A stretch of DNA of 36,624 nucleotides, taken from Pelomyxa schiedti (taxonomy: Eukaryota > Protista > Evosea). Location: the NCBI GenBank assembly GCA_020536535.1, contig JAHLWZ010000202.1, forward strand, positions 1 through 36,624, given 5' to 3'. The notes beneath the pieces are model-generated. The model was given only the letters and a program-made list of their open reading frames with translations. It did not search any database and had not been told where the DNA came from. The position numbers and the translations under genes are program-made. This document shows, one piece after another, positions 825 through 35,664 of this stretch (its first letter is position 1; each line of letters starts with the position of its first letter).

Positions 825-2300
825 TGTCAGTGCAGTGTTCATTCCGCCAAACTGGAACAATTCCTGCTTGGTGGGCAGAAGGTACCACGTGGGTGCCGTG
901 CGGACCAAGTGGGGCGTACTTGTGGGTGGGTTCATCTCGTACTGAGGCATTCCGAGGTGTTCCACCCACAATGCATTATCCCCAACTCTTTGGCATCCAA
1001 CTCGCACGTGGATGATACTTGTCTGTGGATGTTCAAGTTAGTTCTTTTTGGGATGTAGAACGGGGATGCTCACTGTTTTCCTCGATAGATAGTGGCTACA
1101 TCTTGAGGAGTGGCAGAATCCGAGCAGCGGCCCAAGAGTGCATTTTTGCAGTCTCGCTTTCTTCAATCCATGGAACCAGCTTTAAAACCGGAAACAAAGT
1201 GAGCCAAATTAGAAAAGGAGTTGGAGGGAACTACTTGCATGTATTCATCTCCAATGAACCCTGCGAAAATAGGAAGGTCAACAAAAATGAGGTAATGAAA
1301 CTTCATGAAGTCTTATTAGCTGGTCGAGGTGAAGCTGATCATAGCTAAACCAGTATGGGTATAGTTTTTGCCACTGGGAAATGTCCAAGGAGGTTGATGC
1401 ACGTCCCCCAGCACTACGTGGAAACACAGTAAGTGTTACAGATACGATTAGATTATCTCCAACTGTGGATATTCCAAGGAATAGAGTTGGATAGCTGTTG
1501 CCGTTGGTTGCCTTGCGAAACGGGACTGCAGTTGATTGTGTCTGGAGTCACTTCACGAACAGGAGTGGAGACGCCGATTCTGGCTTACTGGTTCGTGCCT
1601 CCTTTGTAGTAGAGCAAGTAGACGGAACACTGGGTCTAGAACTAGAAGTAGTAGTAGCTATAGTGACACCAGATGCACGATGTATAAGTTTTCTTTGCCG
1701 AGTTGGGAGGTTTTTGCAGACTCGGACCGGACCGTTTGGTGTGGCATCACGGAGTGCGTTGCGGTTTGTTGCCTAGACGAAGTGCTCAATTATCAAATAT
1801 ACCTGGTAGGACGTTTAAAAACCGCCTGTAGTAGCCACATCTTTGACTACAAGTTGTTATTACTCCACTGATCCGCACCTTCACTCAGAATCCAGCTTGG
1901 AATGAAGTTACCTCAAGACAATGTGACAACCCCAAAAATTAGTTGAGCGTGATGCAGCGAATGTAAATTCTCTCTGGCCGTCATGGTAACGCTCCAGCCA
2001 AGTATTGCAACCTCTACTGTCAATTCCGAGATTATTTTCATTGGTAGTACCATGAACATGAGCATGTTTCCCATCATTGGATTTGGAACTGCATGGGTGA
2101 TGCTGCAATCCACCAGTACTTGTTCTCTGCTCATGTGCAGAAGCCCTCCAAACATCTTTTAAGGCCCAGACCCACAGTGCAAAAGTAATATCAAATCGCA
2201 ATTGGCAAGTCAAATGGCCGTGCTCTTCAGTAACCCAAGGCGGACGACGGAACATCTGCAATTCTAAGGTACGAAGGCCGGTTGTGTAACATTCATTCAC
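825..2300 (-). pseudogene. Possible degraded multi-exon hypothetical gene
   Basis: Several GT..AG-bounded segments between about 1415 and 825 can be spliced into one open frame (CWGTCINLLGHF...WYLLPTKQELFQFGGMNT). The upstream segment (about 1430-1775) has stops in all three frames. No domain recognised. Confidence 0.25.
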
Positions 2301-3480: not shown

Positions 3481-4029
3481 ATACAATGTTGATTCATTAA
3501 ACAGAAAACAACAACCACGCCTGATCCGATCTGCTCTGAACTTGCGGTCGGTGCTGCTCTTGCTGCTGTGCTTGATCACTTATGTGTTTTCCAACCACCA
3601 TCAGCCATCAGCCACCACTTGTTGTTGTGCTGCTTGCTGTCACCACCCGCCTGTGTTTGTCTCTGTCTCGCCACACCGCCTGCTTACAGTACTGTATGTT
3701 ATTGTTGTGACTTGTGTGCTTATTGTTGTGTGTCCTAATAACAGGGAGTTATGTCTTGGGAAAAACAAAATTGTGTCTTGGGAAATTTCCTTCAATTCGA
3801 TTTTTTCGCTCCCTAAAAACTTTTCATGCGTTGCGTCAACGTCGTAGATTGGGCCGAGGTGTTTCTGACTGGAGGTTGGTTGTTGTGAAAGTGAATGACA
3901 TGTGATGCTATGCTGGGGGTCCACCGAAGACTTGGAATTCACGCGGTCCTTTTCTTTTTGCCACACCCACAATGCAGTTTGGAGATAAATTTCGTTTTAG
4001 TTTGCCCCGGGAATCCCCCTTATACTTCG

Positions 4030-4169
4030 CCTACAGTAGCTCAGTGAACGCTAGTCCCAACCCAATCCAAACGACACCTCTTCAGAGGCCACTGATTGAA
4101 ATGGGATGTTCCGGTTAGAGCACCAGAGTCTAAAGCTGGGGGTCCTGGGTTCAAGTCCCAGCTGTAGGA
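4030..4169 (+). tRNA. tRNA-like gene, anticodon CUA (amber suppressor type, Tyr-like acceptor), with ~66-nt D-loop insertion (about 4046-4111)
   Basis: Acceptor stem CCTACAG(4030-4036)/CTGTAGG(4162-4168) with discriminator A4169. T8A9. D stem GCTC/GAGC(4118-4121). Anticodon arm CCAGA-GTCTAAA-GCTGG with CTA at 4130-4132. Variable loop GGGTC. T arm CTGGG-TTCAAGT-CCCAG. A TTTTT run follows immediately. Confidence 0.85.
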
Positions 4170-4171
4170 TA

Positions 4172-4176
4172 TTTTT
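4172..4176 (+). terminator. RNA polymerase III terminator (T5)
   Basis: TTTTT begins 3 nt after the tRNA discriminator base. Confidence 0.65.
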
Positions 4177-4208: not shown

Positions 4209-7077
4209 TCATTCATGAGCATTGTTGGCTTTATGCTTGGGGGTGAAGGTGAATCCAGGAGGTGGTGGTCCCAAAAACATTGACGAAATATTCACCCAGT
4301 CAGTGGCCTAATAAAGCATGAAAAAAAAAAAAAAAGGAAGTTGGGTGGAGTGGCAACCTTGGGGCTTGAAAGAAGTGTCTCCAAGTCAGACCTTCCAAAG
4401 TATGCCGGTGCTCTGTCAATCATTCTTGCTGGTAAAACCTCAAGCAATCCAACTGGAACATATCTATTATTGTTAGTAGTCTATATTTTAGCACACTCTT
4501 AATGAAAATTGTGAAATTGATACTAGTGGTTACAGAGGGTTTTGTGTAATCAACCTGTAGGAGAACGAGAGCCATTGCAGTAGGAAGTTCCTGGTGTTTT
4601 CCACACCCCTTGTATCTGACCCCCAGTGCTCCAAACCATTTGAAACGAACTCCTTCACGATGTCCAACCTCTCTGATGCGGAAATATCCCAGTGCTTGCG
4701 TTGCTTGATTTCTTCAAATATCCATGGTTTAATGAGAGCACCTCGCGCAATCGTGGCTGTTGCAACTCCCGTCTGTAATGCGGCATCATAGTCTTCGTAA
4801 CTGAACACATCCCCATTTCCAAGCACCGTGACTTGTTTTTTCCCATTGCTGGAAGTGGAAGCAATCCCAACGCATTGTTTGATAAACTCCCAGTCGGCAA
4901 GTTTGCTGTATCTCTGGTGCCGGGACCGCCCATGGATGATTACAGCATCCACGCCCCATTGAGAGAGGTTGGGTACAATGGTCTTATGCACTGTGGGATT
5001 TTTTTCCTCTTTACCCGTGCGGATTTTGAGAGTCAGAGGCACATCAAGCACCTGAAGAAAAATGTTAGAAATATGCATGGAAATCAGCAAGTGATACCTG
5101 AGACATTGGAAGAAGAATACTCCCAAGTTTGGCAGGACGCTCAAGCAAACCTGCTCCACACCCATAATCCACAAGAAGGTCAATTGGACAACCAGCATTC
5201 ACGTCGACAAAGTCAACCTAAAATGGACTATTTTGGAAATTGCTAGTGCCTTCTCAATCGAGGGTGTCTCATTTCTTGAATTACCTGGAAGTTGTCATTG
5301 ATCACTTCGCATGCTTGTGTCATGAGCTGCGCATCATGGCCAGCAATTTGAATCCCAAAGATATCCTGGGAAGTCTGTGTGAGTGGTATTTTGATGGTCA
5401 GAGGTTTAAGTGTACTTCAGAAGGGTGTCTGCGCAATAAAGCCCATTCATTGATTTTTCCTGAAAGCAAGTTGGGTGCCATTGCCATTTCACCAACAGTG
5501 ATATCTGAATATGGTATTAACAACATCCGATGGATGCTGTTCGGCAGGGAGGGATCACACCTGCCCCAAATTTTTTGCATATTCTTCGGAAAGGTAGATT
5601 TCCAACAGTGGTCAGTGGTGCTAAATACAGTTTTCCTCTCCAATCGATTGATTTCTTCTCGCAAGACCGCAGGGGTTGTTCTGAAGCACAGCTGGTACTG
5701 GTGGAAGGGGTGGTGGGAACAATTTCGTTGCCTGGTGCCCCTTGTTCTGTATTTGGAGGCGGGGCTGCAGGTGGCGCATGTGGTACATTGGTCACTTTCT
5801 TCTGGCCCCCTTTGCCAGTGTTCCCTTTGGGAAAACTTGGGACCCGTTTGAAGGAGTAGGCCTGAAATAAGATAAGTGCAAGCTGGTAGCGTTAAAGACT
5901 AGTAAACCTTCTTTCTTAGAGATTGTAATAGCGCCTTGGGAAGTTGGTTATTTTCAGGGAGTAATTTTTCGGCAGAGTTTTCAGCCACAATGGATTTTTC
6001 ACCCTGTATGATGAACAAAGTGTCAACAGTTGCATCCCCAACGCTAAGAAGCCAAACCACGATATGCTGCCCTCCAAATCTACAGTGTAAGCCACTTGGG
6101 CATACTCCGTACTTCTGAAAAACAAGGCAGTCCCCTCCCAAATCAGACGGCTTTGATTTCAAATACTCTGTGGCTGAATGAATGTATTTGCAACCAGGGA
6201 AATTGCACTGAGAACCCTGCACAACAATAGTTTGAACCACTGTACAAACCAAGAACTAATGCCCCCCCAAAATATCATACCCAACAATCTCACAACAAAA
6301 CAAACCCAAAAACAGACACGGTAGAAAAGGAGGGTTATCCCGAGAAAAGTAAACGGGAATTGTCGATGTCACAAGCATGGGAGCCAACGAACCAACCAAC
6401 CAACCCACCTCGAGCATGTAAGGGCACAGCCTGTCACAGTACATCGACTCAGCTGGCACGCTTGCCCCGTTCTTGGGCCCCTTCCTCCTCCGCTTGTTGC
6501 GGCCCCCCCTTCCCCCTCCTCTGCCCCCCTGATTCCACTCCCTGCCCCCCTTCCCCGTGCCCTCCCCTGTTGTCGTTGGTGGTGGTGGTGTTGTGCTCGC
6601 GCTGGTTGTGGTGGTGGTGTTGTTTGCTGCTGTTCCCTCGCCCCCCTGCTCCTCCCCCTCCCCCTCCCCCTCCTCGTCTGCACCCCCTTCTGCCCCCTCG
6701 TCCTCCGCCTCTTGCTCGCCGCCACCTGTTGGGCCCCCACTGGCGCCTTGGCTCCTTGGCCTCTTGCTGCCGGCTGCTGCTGCTGCTGTCGGTGTGTCTT
6801 CCTCCGCCGCCACTCCGGCGGTGCCTGTGGGTGACGCCCTTGTGGCGGGCGAGGCGCTCGTGCTCGTGCTCGTGCATGTGGCTGTGGTCTTGGGGGCGGC
6901 CGTACGTGGTACGAGGTACTGGGCCTTTATTGGGGCATCCGCGCCAAACACCGGCCTCACTGCCTGTGCTTGTGGTTGTGGTTGTGGCTGTGGCTGTGGC
7001 TGCGGTTGCACCGCCACCACTGGTTGTAGGTCCCCTTCCCCGTTGTGCACGTCTGCCGCCTGGGCTGCCTCCTGCAT
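4209..7077 (-). CDS. DUS3: tRNA-dihydrouridine(47) synthase, Dus3/DUS3L family (multi-exon)
   Basis: Two CCCH-type zinc fingers (LCPYMLE/..[10 protein letters not shown]; [22 protein letters not shown]). Dus motifs [68 protein letters not shown] and GLEHWGSD. C-terminus ...[14 protein letters not shown] with TGA at 4209-4211. Confidence 0.95.
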
Positions 7078-24932: not shown

Positions 24933-26630
<1,698 letters not shown>

Positions 26631-26829
26631 ATACAACACCCCACCACACAACATTCCTTTCCCACCAACCATCACCTTGTATTTTGAATAATCAAAAAAA
26701 CACATTTCGTTGACCAAGTCTCATCCCGGATGAAGCCATCCTGGTGCTCCATGACATAATTAGGACATTCATTAAGTTAACAAAGGAACTGAAAACTTAA
26801 AAATCGCTCTTATTACCCACTAATAAGAG

Positions 26830-27040
26830 GTGACTCTGGGGTTTGGGTTAGATTTTTTCGTGGAGAAGAGAGTGTTTATTACCTTGGACAATACTTTGCG
26901 TTTTTGAATAGTAGTAGTAATAGCAGCTACCTAGCTTGAGGGTACGAAAAAGGGGAGAAGGGGAATGAGGGGAGAAGCGGGAGAAACCGGGAGAAGAGTA
27001 AAGGTTGTGAGGGTCATATGACAACAACAACAACAAGTAT
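26830..27040 (+). repeat. Dispersed G/purine-rich repeat block (copies at about 33612-33830, 33870-33990, 34051-34095 partial, 36413-36624)
   Basis: Near-identical sequence GTGACTCTGGGGTTTGGGTTAGATTTT...GAGGGTACGAAAA(G)nAGAAGGGGAATGAGGGGAGAAGCGGGAGAAAC recurs downstream of ubiquitin loci B, C and D. Confidence 0.9.
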
Positions 27041-27198
27041 GAAACTGGAACTGCACATGTGATATGCTGTAATGCACAACACCTGAGAATGGGAAAGGAA
27101 TGGTGAGATCGGCGACGATTGCTTCGAGGGAAAAAAAAACCAAAAAACCAAACCTGGGTAGAAAGAAGGCAAAGACCCATGCAAGTTCTTGCACAATA

Positions 27199-27397
27199 AC
27201 CGCACCGTGAGCAGCACACATGTTGATTGCGTTCACTAGGGTCCCACTTTGTGACGATCCTCATCAGTGTCACCTCCGCGAACCATGGCTGAGGTCTTCT
27301 TTTTCTGCAGTTTTGTGGAGGTGACGCTGATGAGGATTCGTCACAAAGTGGGAAGCCTGGTGAATGCGATCAACGCGTGTGCTGCTCATGGGGCGGT
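27199..27397 (+). ncRNA. Long imperfect hairpin (pre-miRNA/hpRNA candidate)
   Basis: Arms 27199-27283 and 27310-27397 are reverse complements around a 26-nt loop. About 8 substitutions give G-U pairs on the + strand. Confidence 0.6.
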
Positions 27398-27704
27398 CTG
27401 TTACGTTCAAACGCAACCGCACAGATCATTCTGTTTCTGGAAAAAAGTCATATTCAATGAGAAAAAAAAAACAAAAAAAAAGAGGAAGGTATCAGATTTT
27501 CATTGATGGTTAAGCAGGTATGTACTCGCACTGTGTCCCTGGTTGTTGTTTCCTTCACTTCTTTTGTTCATTAGCAATGAGGGGGAAAAAAAAACCGAGC
27601 TCGCAAAGGCGCACTGTTTGGGCTCCTGTTGTTTCGTGTCGACCGCTGCATTGGATTCTCCTGCAGCCGGCCGGGCGTAGTTAAGGTTTTTTTAGAGTTC
27701 TGGA

Positions 27705-30070
27705 TTATTTTTCTCTTTTGAAAGCTCCGAAGCCAATTTCAAGGGTTTTCAAACAGTTGCAAGGGTGCTTCCCGCGGGGGTCTATTTTTAGCGCTAAAGG
27801 AACTTTTCGTAGTTGGTAGCACCCTTTGCTTTGTAACAAAGTCCATCCCAGGATGGGTTGAGCAAGTTGTGAAGAGGAAGAATTGATTTGTGTGGTGCTC
27901 TTCTTTGGGTCTGTGGTGGAATTTGAACTGGTTGCTGTGACGAACCTCTTGTTGTGGTTGCTCCAGCCATTCGATGTGTTGATGGCAAGCTCGATGACGA
28001 GGGTATTTCCTGCACGGGTTGTATTTGGGAAGATGATGATGATGGCTTGTGCGGAGTGGGTGATGGAGAGTGGGAGTTGGAGTGTGACCTCACACCGGGA
28101 TGTTGGTTGTCCTGTGGTGCTGCTGAGTGCTGTTGTGCCTGGTTCTGTGTGATTTGTGCGTGGTTGTTGTTGTTGTTGCTGCTGCTGCTGTTGCTTCTGA
28201 GCTTGAAGAAGCAGTAGTTTACACAACGCAACGCCATCCGGTGACATCGCCAACGCAGAGAGAGCCGCCGTTTGCAATTGGAGTAAGTCGGGTTCCGCGG
28301 GAGGTATCTCTCTCTGGGGAATTGGATTAGTGCTTTCTTCTCGCAGTGGTGGTTGTGTTGTACTCACTCTTTTTTTGGCAGCGGATGCCCGTGAATTCCG
28401 CTAAAAACTGTTCAGATTGCGGGCACAGAAGTGAAAAGGTTTTGGCAGCGGTGCAGTTCGTTGTTCTGCGAGAAGCTGCAGTTCAGTTGGTGGTGGTACG
28501 GCACTATCTGCCGGGAAAGAACCGCCTGGAGAGCGTACGGGAGATGGAGAGCAAGACGATGGCTGGTTGTGGGAACGGGGATTCGTAACGATGACGAGAG
28601 GAGAATACGGTTGCGCGATTCTTTCCCTGACTCATCACCAAGCATCGTGATGGGTAGCGATTCACCATAAATCTTTCTTCAGATTGAGCCCGATGCATCG
28701 CCAATGGGAAGCACTGCATCGCCGATCATTGGGCGATTTTATCTTCAGCGTTAATATTATGGAGGACTTTGTCAGAGAAGATGGCACCCTGTACAATATT
28801 GTAGAGGCAGGGAGCCCTAGTTGTGCCAGATGTGCCTCACACTGCTGTAGTGATTGCAGCGACTTCTGCTTGAACTCCTGGGAACTTGCCTGATCAGGGT
28901 GAACATCGAGCACACGACCACCACCCCTGGTGAAAAATTCTTCCAGCTTGTGCTGAATGGCCTCAAAAGGGCACGATTCTGCGACCCACGAAAACAGAGA
29001 CGGCAGCAGCTCCAATTCTGGTTTCGAACTGAAGTATTTTCCAGCTTGACTCAAGTCGACGAATATTATCGCAGGAGCCAACATCCTCCACGTAAGTTTG
29101 CGCTCCATACAGTCAGTCAGCAATCAGTTTGTGTGACTGTGATGGGATCCAGTTCATGCAATACAAGGTCAGGAGCCATGGATCATCCACTTGAGAAAGC
29201 GCCTTCTGCAAATCAGCGACGGGAAGCGATGAGGAAGGAATGCCACGAGAGGATGGTTTTGAGTGCAAAAGCGTGCTTGTTGAGTTTCCGGTAACCAATG
29301 TCAGGGTGAATGTCACTGGCCTTGATTGGGAATCGGATGTGGTGGTGTTTTTTTTGGAGGGGGGATGAGAAGACAGCAGCCTTTTCATGAAGGTTTCAGG
29401 TGAGGATGACATTAACCCTTCATGAAGCAAGTTGTCCCGGAGCCAATTGAGGGTGTCACTGAGGCATCCAATCCTGACCAACCCAACAAGTTCATCATCA
29501 ATGAACTTGACAGCTTGATCTTGGTGGTTCTTGAAAAGTGGGAGCAAGAAGTTGGTTGCAAATTTGTAAATTTGGGGGTTGTTGGAGTCGTGTAGTGGTG
29601 GCAAAAATCAGCCGGGCATCCTTTCCGAGGTACACAAGTGGGAACAGCAGGATCTTCAGAGAGCTTGTGAAAATGAGAACTAGCTGTGTTTACCTCGGCC
29701 AGTATTTCAGGCTGGGCGGCCAAGTGCTGAAAAATGAGGGGATTGTTGTTCTCACACACAGCTTTGAGGATAAGGCACAAGCTGCCAGGAAGTAGATTCC
29801 CATGCGTTAACTCCACCCATTTTCGGTACATTTTTTCAAAAGCAGGCACAGCTTCTGCTGTCTTGTTCCTTGCTGCTCTGCACGTCATATTTGGCAGGCA
29901 CTTTTGGAAATTCTCGTCACCATCGCAAGCATCGGGAGTAAGAACGGTCTCCCAGAATGGTCGGTCGTACGAGTCCACGTCAATTATGTCGCCGGCGCAG
30001 GGCACTGACTCTGGGTTAGCATGCACCCAATTCAAATACGCACGGAAAAATTGTGGGATTGCAGTCTGAG
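27705..30070 (-). pseudogene. Long intronless frameshifted ORF of unknown function
   Basis: Abutting or overlapping ORFs in successive frames (29412-30035, 29113-29604, 28662-29123, 28504-28719, 28412-28645, 27705-28367) read as one protein. One junction is a 4-nt duplication (CAGTCAGTCAG at about 29110-29120). Confidence 0.55.
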
Positions 30071-30618: not shown

Positions 30619-31475
30619 TCAAATTTGGCTTTCTTTGCAGCCGGCAGCTGTCGTGAATTGACTGCTCCCACCTTCCGGGAGTTCTTGCACTTCCTCTGTG
30701 GTTCTATGACTGTCGATGCGGTGTTTCATTGTATCGGTTGCGTCGGGACCTCTCAGCCGTTGGTTGTCACAGGGTGGTGATGATACTGCTGCTGCTCTGA
30801 TTCTTGAAATCGGCGCGGTTGGTGGACTTGTCACAACTCTCTCAAGGAGGTTCTGGAAGCAATCGCTCATGCAAGAAAGGCTTCTTTCCGAATACAACAC
30901 AGGGTCGTGGTCAAACGTCATCTTGATGGTCTCGCCACCACCGAAGCCGGATGTTGTTGGTGCTGCCGGTGACGGTGATGACAGGGATGACGATGACATT
31001 ATGGCTGACAGAGCAAGTGCGAAAGGTATCCGCTCTCTCGCGGAGCATCCCTTCACGGCCAAGTTTGTGAGGTGGTATTGCTCAAAGGAGGGAGAGGGGA
31101 AGTTGTGGAACTTGAAGAGAGTTCGAAACAGAGATGACTGGGCTCCGGGCAGCACGGCTTCCATGATCTCATCTGGTTGAACACAGCAGCCGTGTTGTGG
31201 AATGTCAAAGAGGATGTGCCGGTGCAGCTGCGAAATGGCTTCGGAGAGCGTGACTGTTTTCGTGAAGCGCAAACGAACCGGCATTGCGGTGATGAACAGA
31301 CCGACTCCTTCGCCGATGTTATCCACTTCCTCGGGCCTTCCGGAATAAACAGTGCCGAATGTCACTTCCGCGGGCGTTCCTGCTGGTTCCGAGAGAGTGC
31401 GGAGAACCAGACCCCAAATCAATTGGAGGATCACGTTCACGGTTGTGCTGTGTGACTTGGCGAAATCCTGCACTT
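30619..31475 (-). CDS. NRPS condensation domain, C-terminal lobe (DCL-like); 5' part lost in the assembly gap
   Basis: Sequence FAKSHSTTVNVILQLIWGLVL, EVTFGTVYSGRP, VGLFITAMPVR, LFRTLFKFHNFP, PFALAL and FDHDPVLYS..SLSCMSDCFQNLL follows the C-domain consensus WGLVL..DVVFGTVVSGRP..VGLFINTLPVR..LFDTLFVFENYP. Confidence 0.85.
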
Positions 31476-31575
31476 NNNNNNNNNNNNNNNNNNNNNNNNN
31501 NNNNNNNNNNNNNNNNNNNNNNNNNNNNNNNNNNNNNNNNNNNNNNNNNNNNNNNNNNNNNNNNNNNNNNNNNNN

Positions 31576-32781
<1,206 letters not shown>

Positions 32782-34665: not shown

Positions 34666-35664
<999 letters not shown>

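Follow-up and report, generated by a model that had tools for sequence, protein, structure and literature searches.

A family of transcribed tRNA-like genes with a conserved arm in the D-loop in Pelomyxa schiedti

The 36,624 nt stretch analysed here (the window; contig JAHLWZ010000202.1, positions 1–36,624, of Pelomyxa schiedti assembly GCA_020536535.1) carries a transcribed tRNA-like gene (nt 4030–4169, forward strand) in which 66 additional nucleotides separate positions 16 and 17. The RNA is 141 nt long and combines a full tRNA shape with an arm that extends out of the D-loop. The gene probably belongs to a small family specifying a non-decoding, tRNA-mimicking RNA, in which the arm serves as a permanent docking domain. 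The parts of the gene and its flanking signals are given in Table 1.

Table 1. Features of the tRNA-like gene and its flanks (positions in the window)
Feature	Position (nt)	Strand	Basis and remarks
DUSE-like upstream promoter element ACCCACAAT	3965–3973	+	CCCACAA core begins 63 nt 5' of the first transcribed G
G-1, probable transcription start	4029	+	RNA 5' end seen; G in all four intact copies
tRNA positions 1–16	4030–4045	+	Acceptor 5' strand (C1 C2), U8 A9, D-stem 5' strand, A14 G15 U16; from sequence and cloverleaf
Self-closing arm at 16/17	4046–4111	+	66 nt (65 in paralogues); four helices, 4-nt bulge, two internal loops, terminal hairpin
D-loop 3' part with G18 G19, D-stem 3' strand, A26	4112–4122	+	Sequence and cloverleaf
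Abnormal anticodon arm	4123–4139	+	4 bp, A31·G39 mismatch, G32; CUA triplet at 4130–4132 (CCA in three other copies)
Variable loop (differs from copy to copy) and invariant T-arm/B box	4140–4161	+	Alignment of copies
Acceptor 3' strand (G72) and discriminator A73	4162–4169	+	3' limit of RNA contigs; two compensatory pair changes between types
T5 run, RNA polymerase III-type terminator	4172–4176	+	Sequence

With nt 4046–4111 deleted, the remaining 74 nt form a cloverleaf that passes ARAGORN even when the threshold is set to 115% and that is normal save for its anticodon arm; the four intact copies of the family all pass once the insert is removed. An earlier note on this DNA had claimed that removal of the insert restores a canonical D-loop, and the ARAGORN result bears this out. 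The position of the insert and its four helices also agree with that description: GAAC (4046–4049) pairs with GTTC (4108–4111), GTCCCA (4054–4059) with TGGGAT (4102–4107), CAATC (4063–4067) with GATTG (4094–4098), and CCTC (4077–4080) with GAGG (4085–4088). The insertion point, 16/17, differs from the canonical eukaryotic intron site at 37/38, one base 3' of the anticodon. As had been expected, the intact gene escapes standard tRNA finders, since ARAGORN called no tRNA in the whole window, and Rfam returned a single sub-threshold tRNA match (21 bits) to the 3' part of the gene only. Standard annotation with tRNA finders and Rfam misses genes of this kind.

At least six copies are present at four loci of the P. 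schiedti genome, and the insert is kept in all of them. Three have the triplet CUA (the window copy, on contig C202, and two on C372, one of them truncated at the contig end) and three have CCA (two on C19, one with its 5' part deleted, and one on C2236), so that C202, C372, C19 and C2236 each carry one of the four intact copies. A covariance model revealed no extra insert-bearing member among the 150 candidates scored. Every copy is followed by a T-run of five to ten residues. Between the CUA and CCA types the insert is 86–94% identical and the tRNA body 84–87%, with the promoter spacer at 44–53% (shuffled sequences, 40%) and other flanks at 35–44%; in some comparisons the arm is the most conserved part (94% versus 85%). 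G-1, C1-G72, C2-G71 and A73 are invariant, the triplet and the variable loop vary, and acceptor pairs 3 and 4 are altered on both sides between types, giving two compensatory pairs.

The description of the insert as highly structured needs to be qualified. Its ends pair with each other in only 3–6 of 500 shuffled sequences and in the minimum free energy (MFE) folds of three of the four copies, so that end closure, like the conservation of the fold among paralogues, exceeds chance. The stability, on the other hand, had been overstated, as the folding energy is just marginally better than that of shuffled controls (z-scores: window copy, -1.9; paralogues, -0.6 to -1.1). The consensus fold of the aligned copies is a cloverleaf plus arm with 38 pairs, none of them broken. 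Of the nine insert columns that vary, eight lie in unpaired positions and one retains its pair (p about 0.006, a rough value because the copies are related). Covariation within the arm amounts to one change from G·U to A-U, four related copies giving little covariation in any case. Given the conservation, the unbroken pairs and the concentration of variable columns in unpaired positions, the insert appears from the alignment to be under selection for sequence as well as fold, including the unpaired loops. Gene conversion between copies could add to the likeness of the inserts.

Upstream of the gene, CCCACAAT begins 63 nt 5' of the G before position 1 in all four intact copies. The DUSE-like element precedes the 5'-deleted C19 copy as well, and thus each copy with upstream DNA has one. 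In the same genome, CCCAYAA lies 62–64 nt upstream of 20 U6 genes (control, 0), and none of 32 ordinary tRNA loci has it at that spacing; the chance of such a word is about 0.2% per 7-nt slot. CCCACAATKCA occurs 391 times genome-wide against 37, but this excess was not used, as coding DNA is also rich in the word; its fixed position was taken as the evidence. The gene thus has a WCCCAYAA-type element about 63 nt upstream of its start, in common with snRNA genes, as is expected of a DUSE-driven ncRNA gene. In dictyostelids, snRNA and Class I genes are preceded by the DUSE at a distance of about 63 nt (PMC3188802, PMC7919456). Together with the T-run terminator, the position of the element indicates that the gene is built like a U6 gene and unlike the tRNA genes of the organism. 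The genome carries at least 20 U6 snRNA genes, an unusually large family, with a DUSE-type promoter outside the dictyostelids.

Expression was assessed in two Smart-seq2 single-cell runs (PMC8887013) from one sample, analysed as contigs. RNA contigs cover nt 4029–4169, with none on nt 3700–4028, and sequence differences assign them individually to C202, C372, C19 and C2236. Unspliced RNA was found from all four intact copies, with the insert joined to its tRNA flanks. In a contig of run X4, the template-switch adapter abuts G4029, the start predicted from the spacing of the element, and the sequence reads on into the insert, and a contig across the 3' junction has about 41 insert letters (27 aligned and 14 as a loose end) and 58 letters beyond. 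The insert is not a dispersed repeat, and RNA containing it is made; the earlier note had named a dispersed repeat without RNA as an outcome fatal to its proposal. Two contigs, representing both runs, end at A73 (nt 4169), and one contig has a single non-genomic C between A73 and the adapter, which hints weakly at CCA addition. Contigs 17 and 23 (nt 4103–4169) show one difference beyond the C372 prediction, which may reflect allelic variation, the alignment itself or misreading of a modified base. Contigs of the two runs contained neither a spliced joint skipping the insert nor a loose end at nt 4112, in a library type that is biased against mature tRNA. Mature tRNAs with their modifications are undersampled by Smart-seq2, which preferentially captures precursors or A-tailed decay substrates, contigs lose rare forms, and a spliced joint could escape detection because the 5' exon has just 17 nt.

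The anticodon arm is abnormal in every copy: residue 32 is G, and A31 is mismatched with G39. By comparison, the 32 ordinary tRNA loci without exception show a pyrimidine at 32 and Watson–Crick pairing of 31 with 39. The copies do not form the arm of a decoding tRNA (5-bp anticodon stem and 7-nt loop with pyrimidine 32 and U33). ARAGORN labels the CUA cloverleaf as tRNA-Pyl, an identity that was rejected. The hallmarks of tRNA-Pyl are a 6-bp anticodon stem, a 3-nt variable loop, the absence of G18G19 and of TΨC, and one base between the acceptor and D-stems, and the cloverleaf has none of them. In eukaryotes, C1-G72 together with A73 specifies Tyr and G-1 together with A73 specifies His, while Trp requires G1-C72 (PMC9976931); a CCA-bearing tRNA with the C1-G72 end would risk mistranslation. 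Supply of a missing Trp or Tyr tRNA was dismissed as a role, as the genome has ordinary Trp-CCA genes and intron-containing Tyr-GUA genes. [quoted passage not shown] In two weak tests, reading through TAG lengthened open reading frames merely in proportion to triplet frequency, and TAG terminates three ubiquitin arrays in the window; UAG appears to be a normal stop, which counts against its reassignment.

If the RNA is a tRNA mimic, the DUSE-like element would direct its transcription as in U6 genes, presumably by RNA polymerase III, and would make up for the A box, which is split by the insert. Transcription would start at G-1 and stop in the oligo-T run, in the manner of RNA polymerase III. 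The transcript is predicted to fold into a cloverleaf in which U8-A14, G15-C48 and the T-loop partners of G18/G19 are intact, a fold supported by conservation. Positions 16/17 belong to the variable, solvent-facing part of the D-loop, so that an arm leaving there could be accommodated, in model terms, as a rod projecting from the L-shape. The 3' end would be trimmed to A73, probably followed by CCA addition, with the arm staying on, steps that are partly seen in the contigs. Decoding would be precluded by G32, A31·G39, the freely varying triplet and the bulky arm at the elbow, and the RNA may act as an adaptor or decoy instead. The tRNA shell would provide stability and, through the kept end (G-1, C1-G72, A73), could bind a tRNA-handling protein, while the invariant loops of the arm may dock a second partner, by analogy with the tRNA-like Y RNAs of bacteria. 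TyrRS, HisRS and the TROVE protein of the genome would be the first candidate partners. Counting against the tRNA-mimic reading are the textbook D-loop obtained when the insert is removed, the modest stability of the insert, the scant covariation within the arm, the library bias against mature tRNAs, and the fact that no homologue was found outside this genome.

The first of these points is what would be expected of a D-loop intron, removed without a BHB to yield CUA tRNAs (amber suppressors, probably charged with Tyr) and CCA tRNAs, the sequenced RNA being an end-trimmed precursor. This explanation is considered unlikely, even though the cloverleaf is cleanly restored, the genome encodes two tRNA-endonuclease catalytic domains, the C1-G72/A73 end is of the Tyr type and CUA is one change away from GUA. 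Precedent exists in Cyanidioschyzon merolae, with 14 D-loop introns of up to 69 nt, some of them lacking the central helix ('No H'), in genes with upstream promoters (PMC3728597), so that the missing BHB is compatible with splicing here and such splicing is still conceivable. The library type, which misses mature tRNAs, likewise leaves room for a D-loop intron devoid of any motif. Against this, enumeration of all junction pairs gave no strict or relaxed BHB that regenerates a canonical D-loop. Splicing on the GAAC/GTTC helix would leave a D-loop of 12–13 nt without G18, confirming (at 13 nt) the judgement made by eye in the earlier note that a strict BHB on this helix does not give a canonical loop. 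Only one 4-pair option retains G18G19 in every copy, and it consists mostly of G·U pairs. The endonuclease is already served by tRNA-Tyr genes with ordinary introns at 37/38. The insert is conserved at least as well as the exons, unpaired loops included, and selection-like conservation of loops is unusual in tRNA introns. G32 and A31·G39 occur in every copy, and the spliced contig is absent from both runs. The CCA triplet on a C1-G72 end clashes with the G1-C72 identity of Trp (PMC9976931). The earlier note had left the choice between an intron gating a suppressor tRNA and a retained domain of a tRNA-like ncRNA; the latter has gained support from the U6-type promoter, conserved insert, unspliced RNA and abnormal anticodon arm, while the former is weakened by the lack of a usable BHB, by the CCA sisters with their Tyr-type acceptor end and by the ordinary Trp and Tyr genes.

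Recent duplication or gene conversion could account for the likeness of the copies if the RNA were a tRNA derivative (a pseudogene or SINE-like master) that is expressed yet selfish or without function and is A-tailed for decay. Two of the six copies are damaged or lie within segmental duplications (the second C19 copy lacks its 5' part), the folding energy is modest, the collections searched held no homologue, and capture by oligo-dT suggests tailing. This is nonetheless quite improbable, as the flanks have diverged to near-random identity yet gene and terminator survive together with the element at its unchanged distance, and the acceptor stem shows double compensatory changes. Unlike retroposed sequences, the copies each bring the promoter with them and lack an A-tail. 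By copy number (at least six), T-run ends and the retained upstream element, the family also falls outside the tRNA-derived SINEs. Least probable is that the tRNA shell is a carrier, discarded or left as a by-product, for an excised 65-nt arm (linear or circular), a scheme that would suit the self-closing arm, its leading conservation in some comparisons and the defective anticodon arm but that finds no excision motif, no RNA contig starting or ending at nt 4046 or 4111, and no snoRNA, Sm or other Rfam signature.

Among known systems, the gene resembles the D-loop intron genes of C. merolae in insert length (up to 69 nt), split A box and upstream promoter (PMC3728597). It differs from these and from archaeal intron genes in lacking any BHB (or motif resembling one) by which the loop would be restored and in the exon-like conservation of the insert; compared with C. 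merolae, the anticodon arm of the spliced product would be defective, no missing isotype would be filled, and the upstream element is absent from the ordinary tRNA genes of the genome. With the dictyostelid DUSE-driven small RNAs (snRNAs, Class I/II) it shares the element about 63 nt 5' of an initiating G and the oligo-T end (PMC3188802, PMC7919456), but Class I RNAs are about 50–60 nt long with a terminal stem and CCTTACAG, while the Pelomyxa RNA is 141 nt, tRNA-shaped, without CCTTACAG and found outside Dictyostelia. In the bacterial YrlA/Yrn1 RNAs, a long interrupted stem is joined to a tRNA-mimic module whose D/T elbow residues are intact and which can serve as a substrate of tRNA-processing enzymes (PMC4201824). 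The Pelomyxa RNA has a comparable module and stem, but is unpermuted, with a free acceptor end and the stem leaving from the D-loop; the Ro60-binding motif (GNCGAA or GGUCCGA) is absent from it, and Rfam gave no Y RNA or YrlA match. tRNA-Sec genes combine an snRNA-type upstream promoter with a B box and start at or beside the mature 5' end. The Pelomyxa gene is similar in this plan and start, but has no UCA anticodon, G73, long variable arm, 9/4 fold or 6-bp D-stem. Vault RNA, mascRNA/menRNA and tRNA-derived SINEs are RNA polymerase III or tRNA-derived ncRNAs that use tRNA promoter boxes or processing; the Pelomyxa RNA differs in its full cloverleaf, own promoter, low copy number, lack of an A-tail and lack of an Rfam match.

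A second tRNA-like RNA, in two copies, is encoded on contig C590 (about nt 1464–1665, forward strand), sharing with the present family both the element at -63 and the C1-G72/A73 end. It is permuted, with the T-arm and acceptor 3' strand followed by a linker of about 40 nt and then the acceptor 5' strand and D-arm, all within a long interrupted terminal stem, which is the layout of bacterial YrlA, although Rfam gave no match. The genome also has an intron-split TROVE-domain gene of Ro60 or TEP1 type (C807, nt 26,546–27,809, forward strand). The C590 element and the TROVE gene fit a wider set of tRNA mimics. It may tentatively be proposed that the RNA belongs to an undescribed class of Archamoebae RNAs, with snRNA promoters and tRNA scaffolds, in which the site of attachment of the arm on the cloverleaf varies (D-loop in the present family, a permuted YrlA-like form on C590) and which would tether proteins as bacterial Y RNAs do, or else that its genes reveal BHB-independent D-loop splicing that yields a natural amber suppressor.

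The RNA is known from one genome. Searches of metagenome, prokaryotic-genome and viral-contig collections, which are poor in amoebae so that blanks say little, returned no homologue; the lone metagenome match was a chance similarity within a bacterial coding region. A resemblance of the 5' strand of the arm to Y RNAs was set aside, as were one to a telomerase template (the CCCAA repeats differ between types and are paired) and a possible pairing of an arm loop with the exon junction, which fits C372 alone. The papers searched held no description of such an RNA, and neither outcome, arm kept or arm spliced, is reported in them. If the arm is kept, this would be a natural tRNA with a permanent 65-nt elbow domain, and both tRNA-mimic adaptors and the DUSE promoter would be extended to Archamoebae; if it is spliced, D-loop introns would be extended beyond the algae and archaea, with excision independent of a BHB, and the product would be an amber-reading tRNA in an organism that seemingly uses UAG as a stop.

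The gene is nuclear, as it is flanked by eukaryotic, intron-containing genes in a window with polyubiquitin arrays, and a symbiont origin was rejected on these grounds. Its convergent neighbour (about nt 4300–7077, reverse strand) is an intron-containing gene for a DUS3-like tRNA dihydrouridine synthase, an adjacency that is probably due to chance since the other copies have different neighbours. In three polyubiquitin arrays, the last unit stops with TAG after LVLRL, without the C-terminal RGG (nt 26,610–26,630, 32,761–32,781 and 35,644–35,664, forward strand). The window also contains an NRPS-type condensation domain (nt 30,619–31,587, reverse strand; Pfam PF00668, E = 3e-17) in this protist contig, and a long imperfect inverted repeat (nt 27,199–27,397) with 47-nt arms that are 81% complementary.
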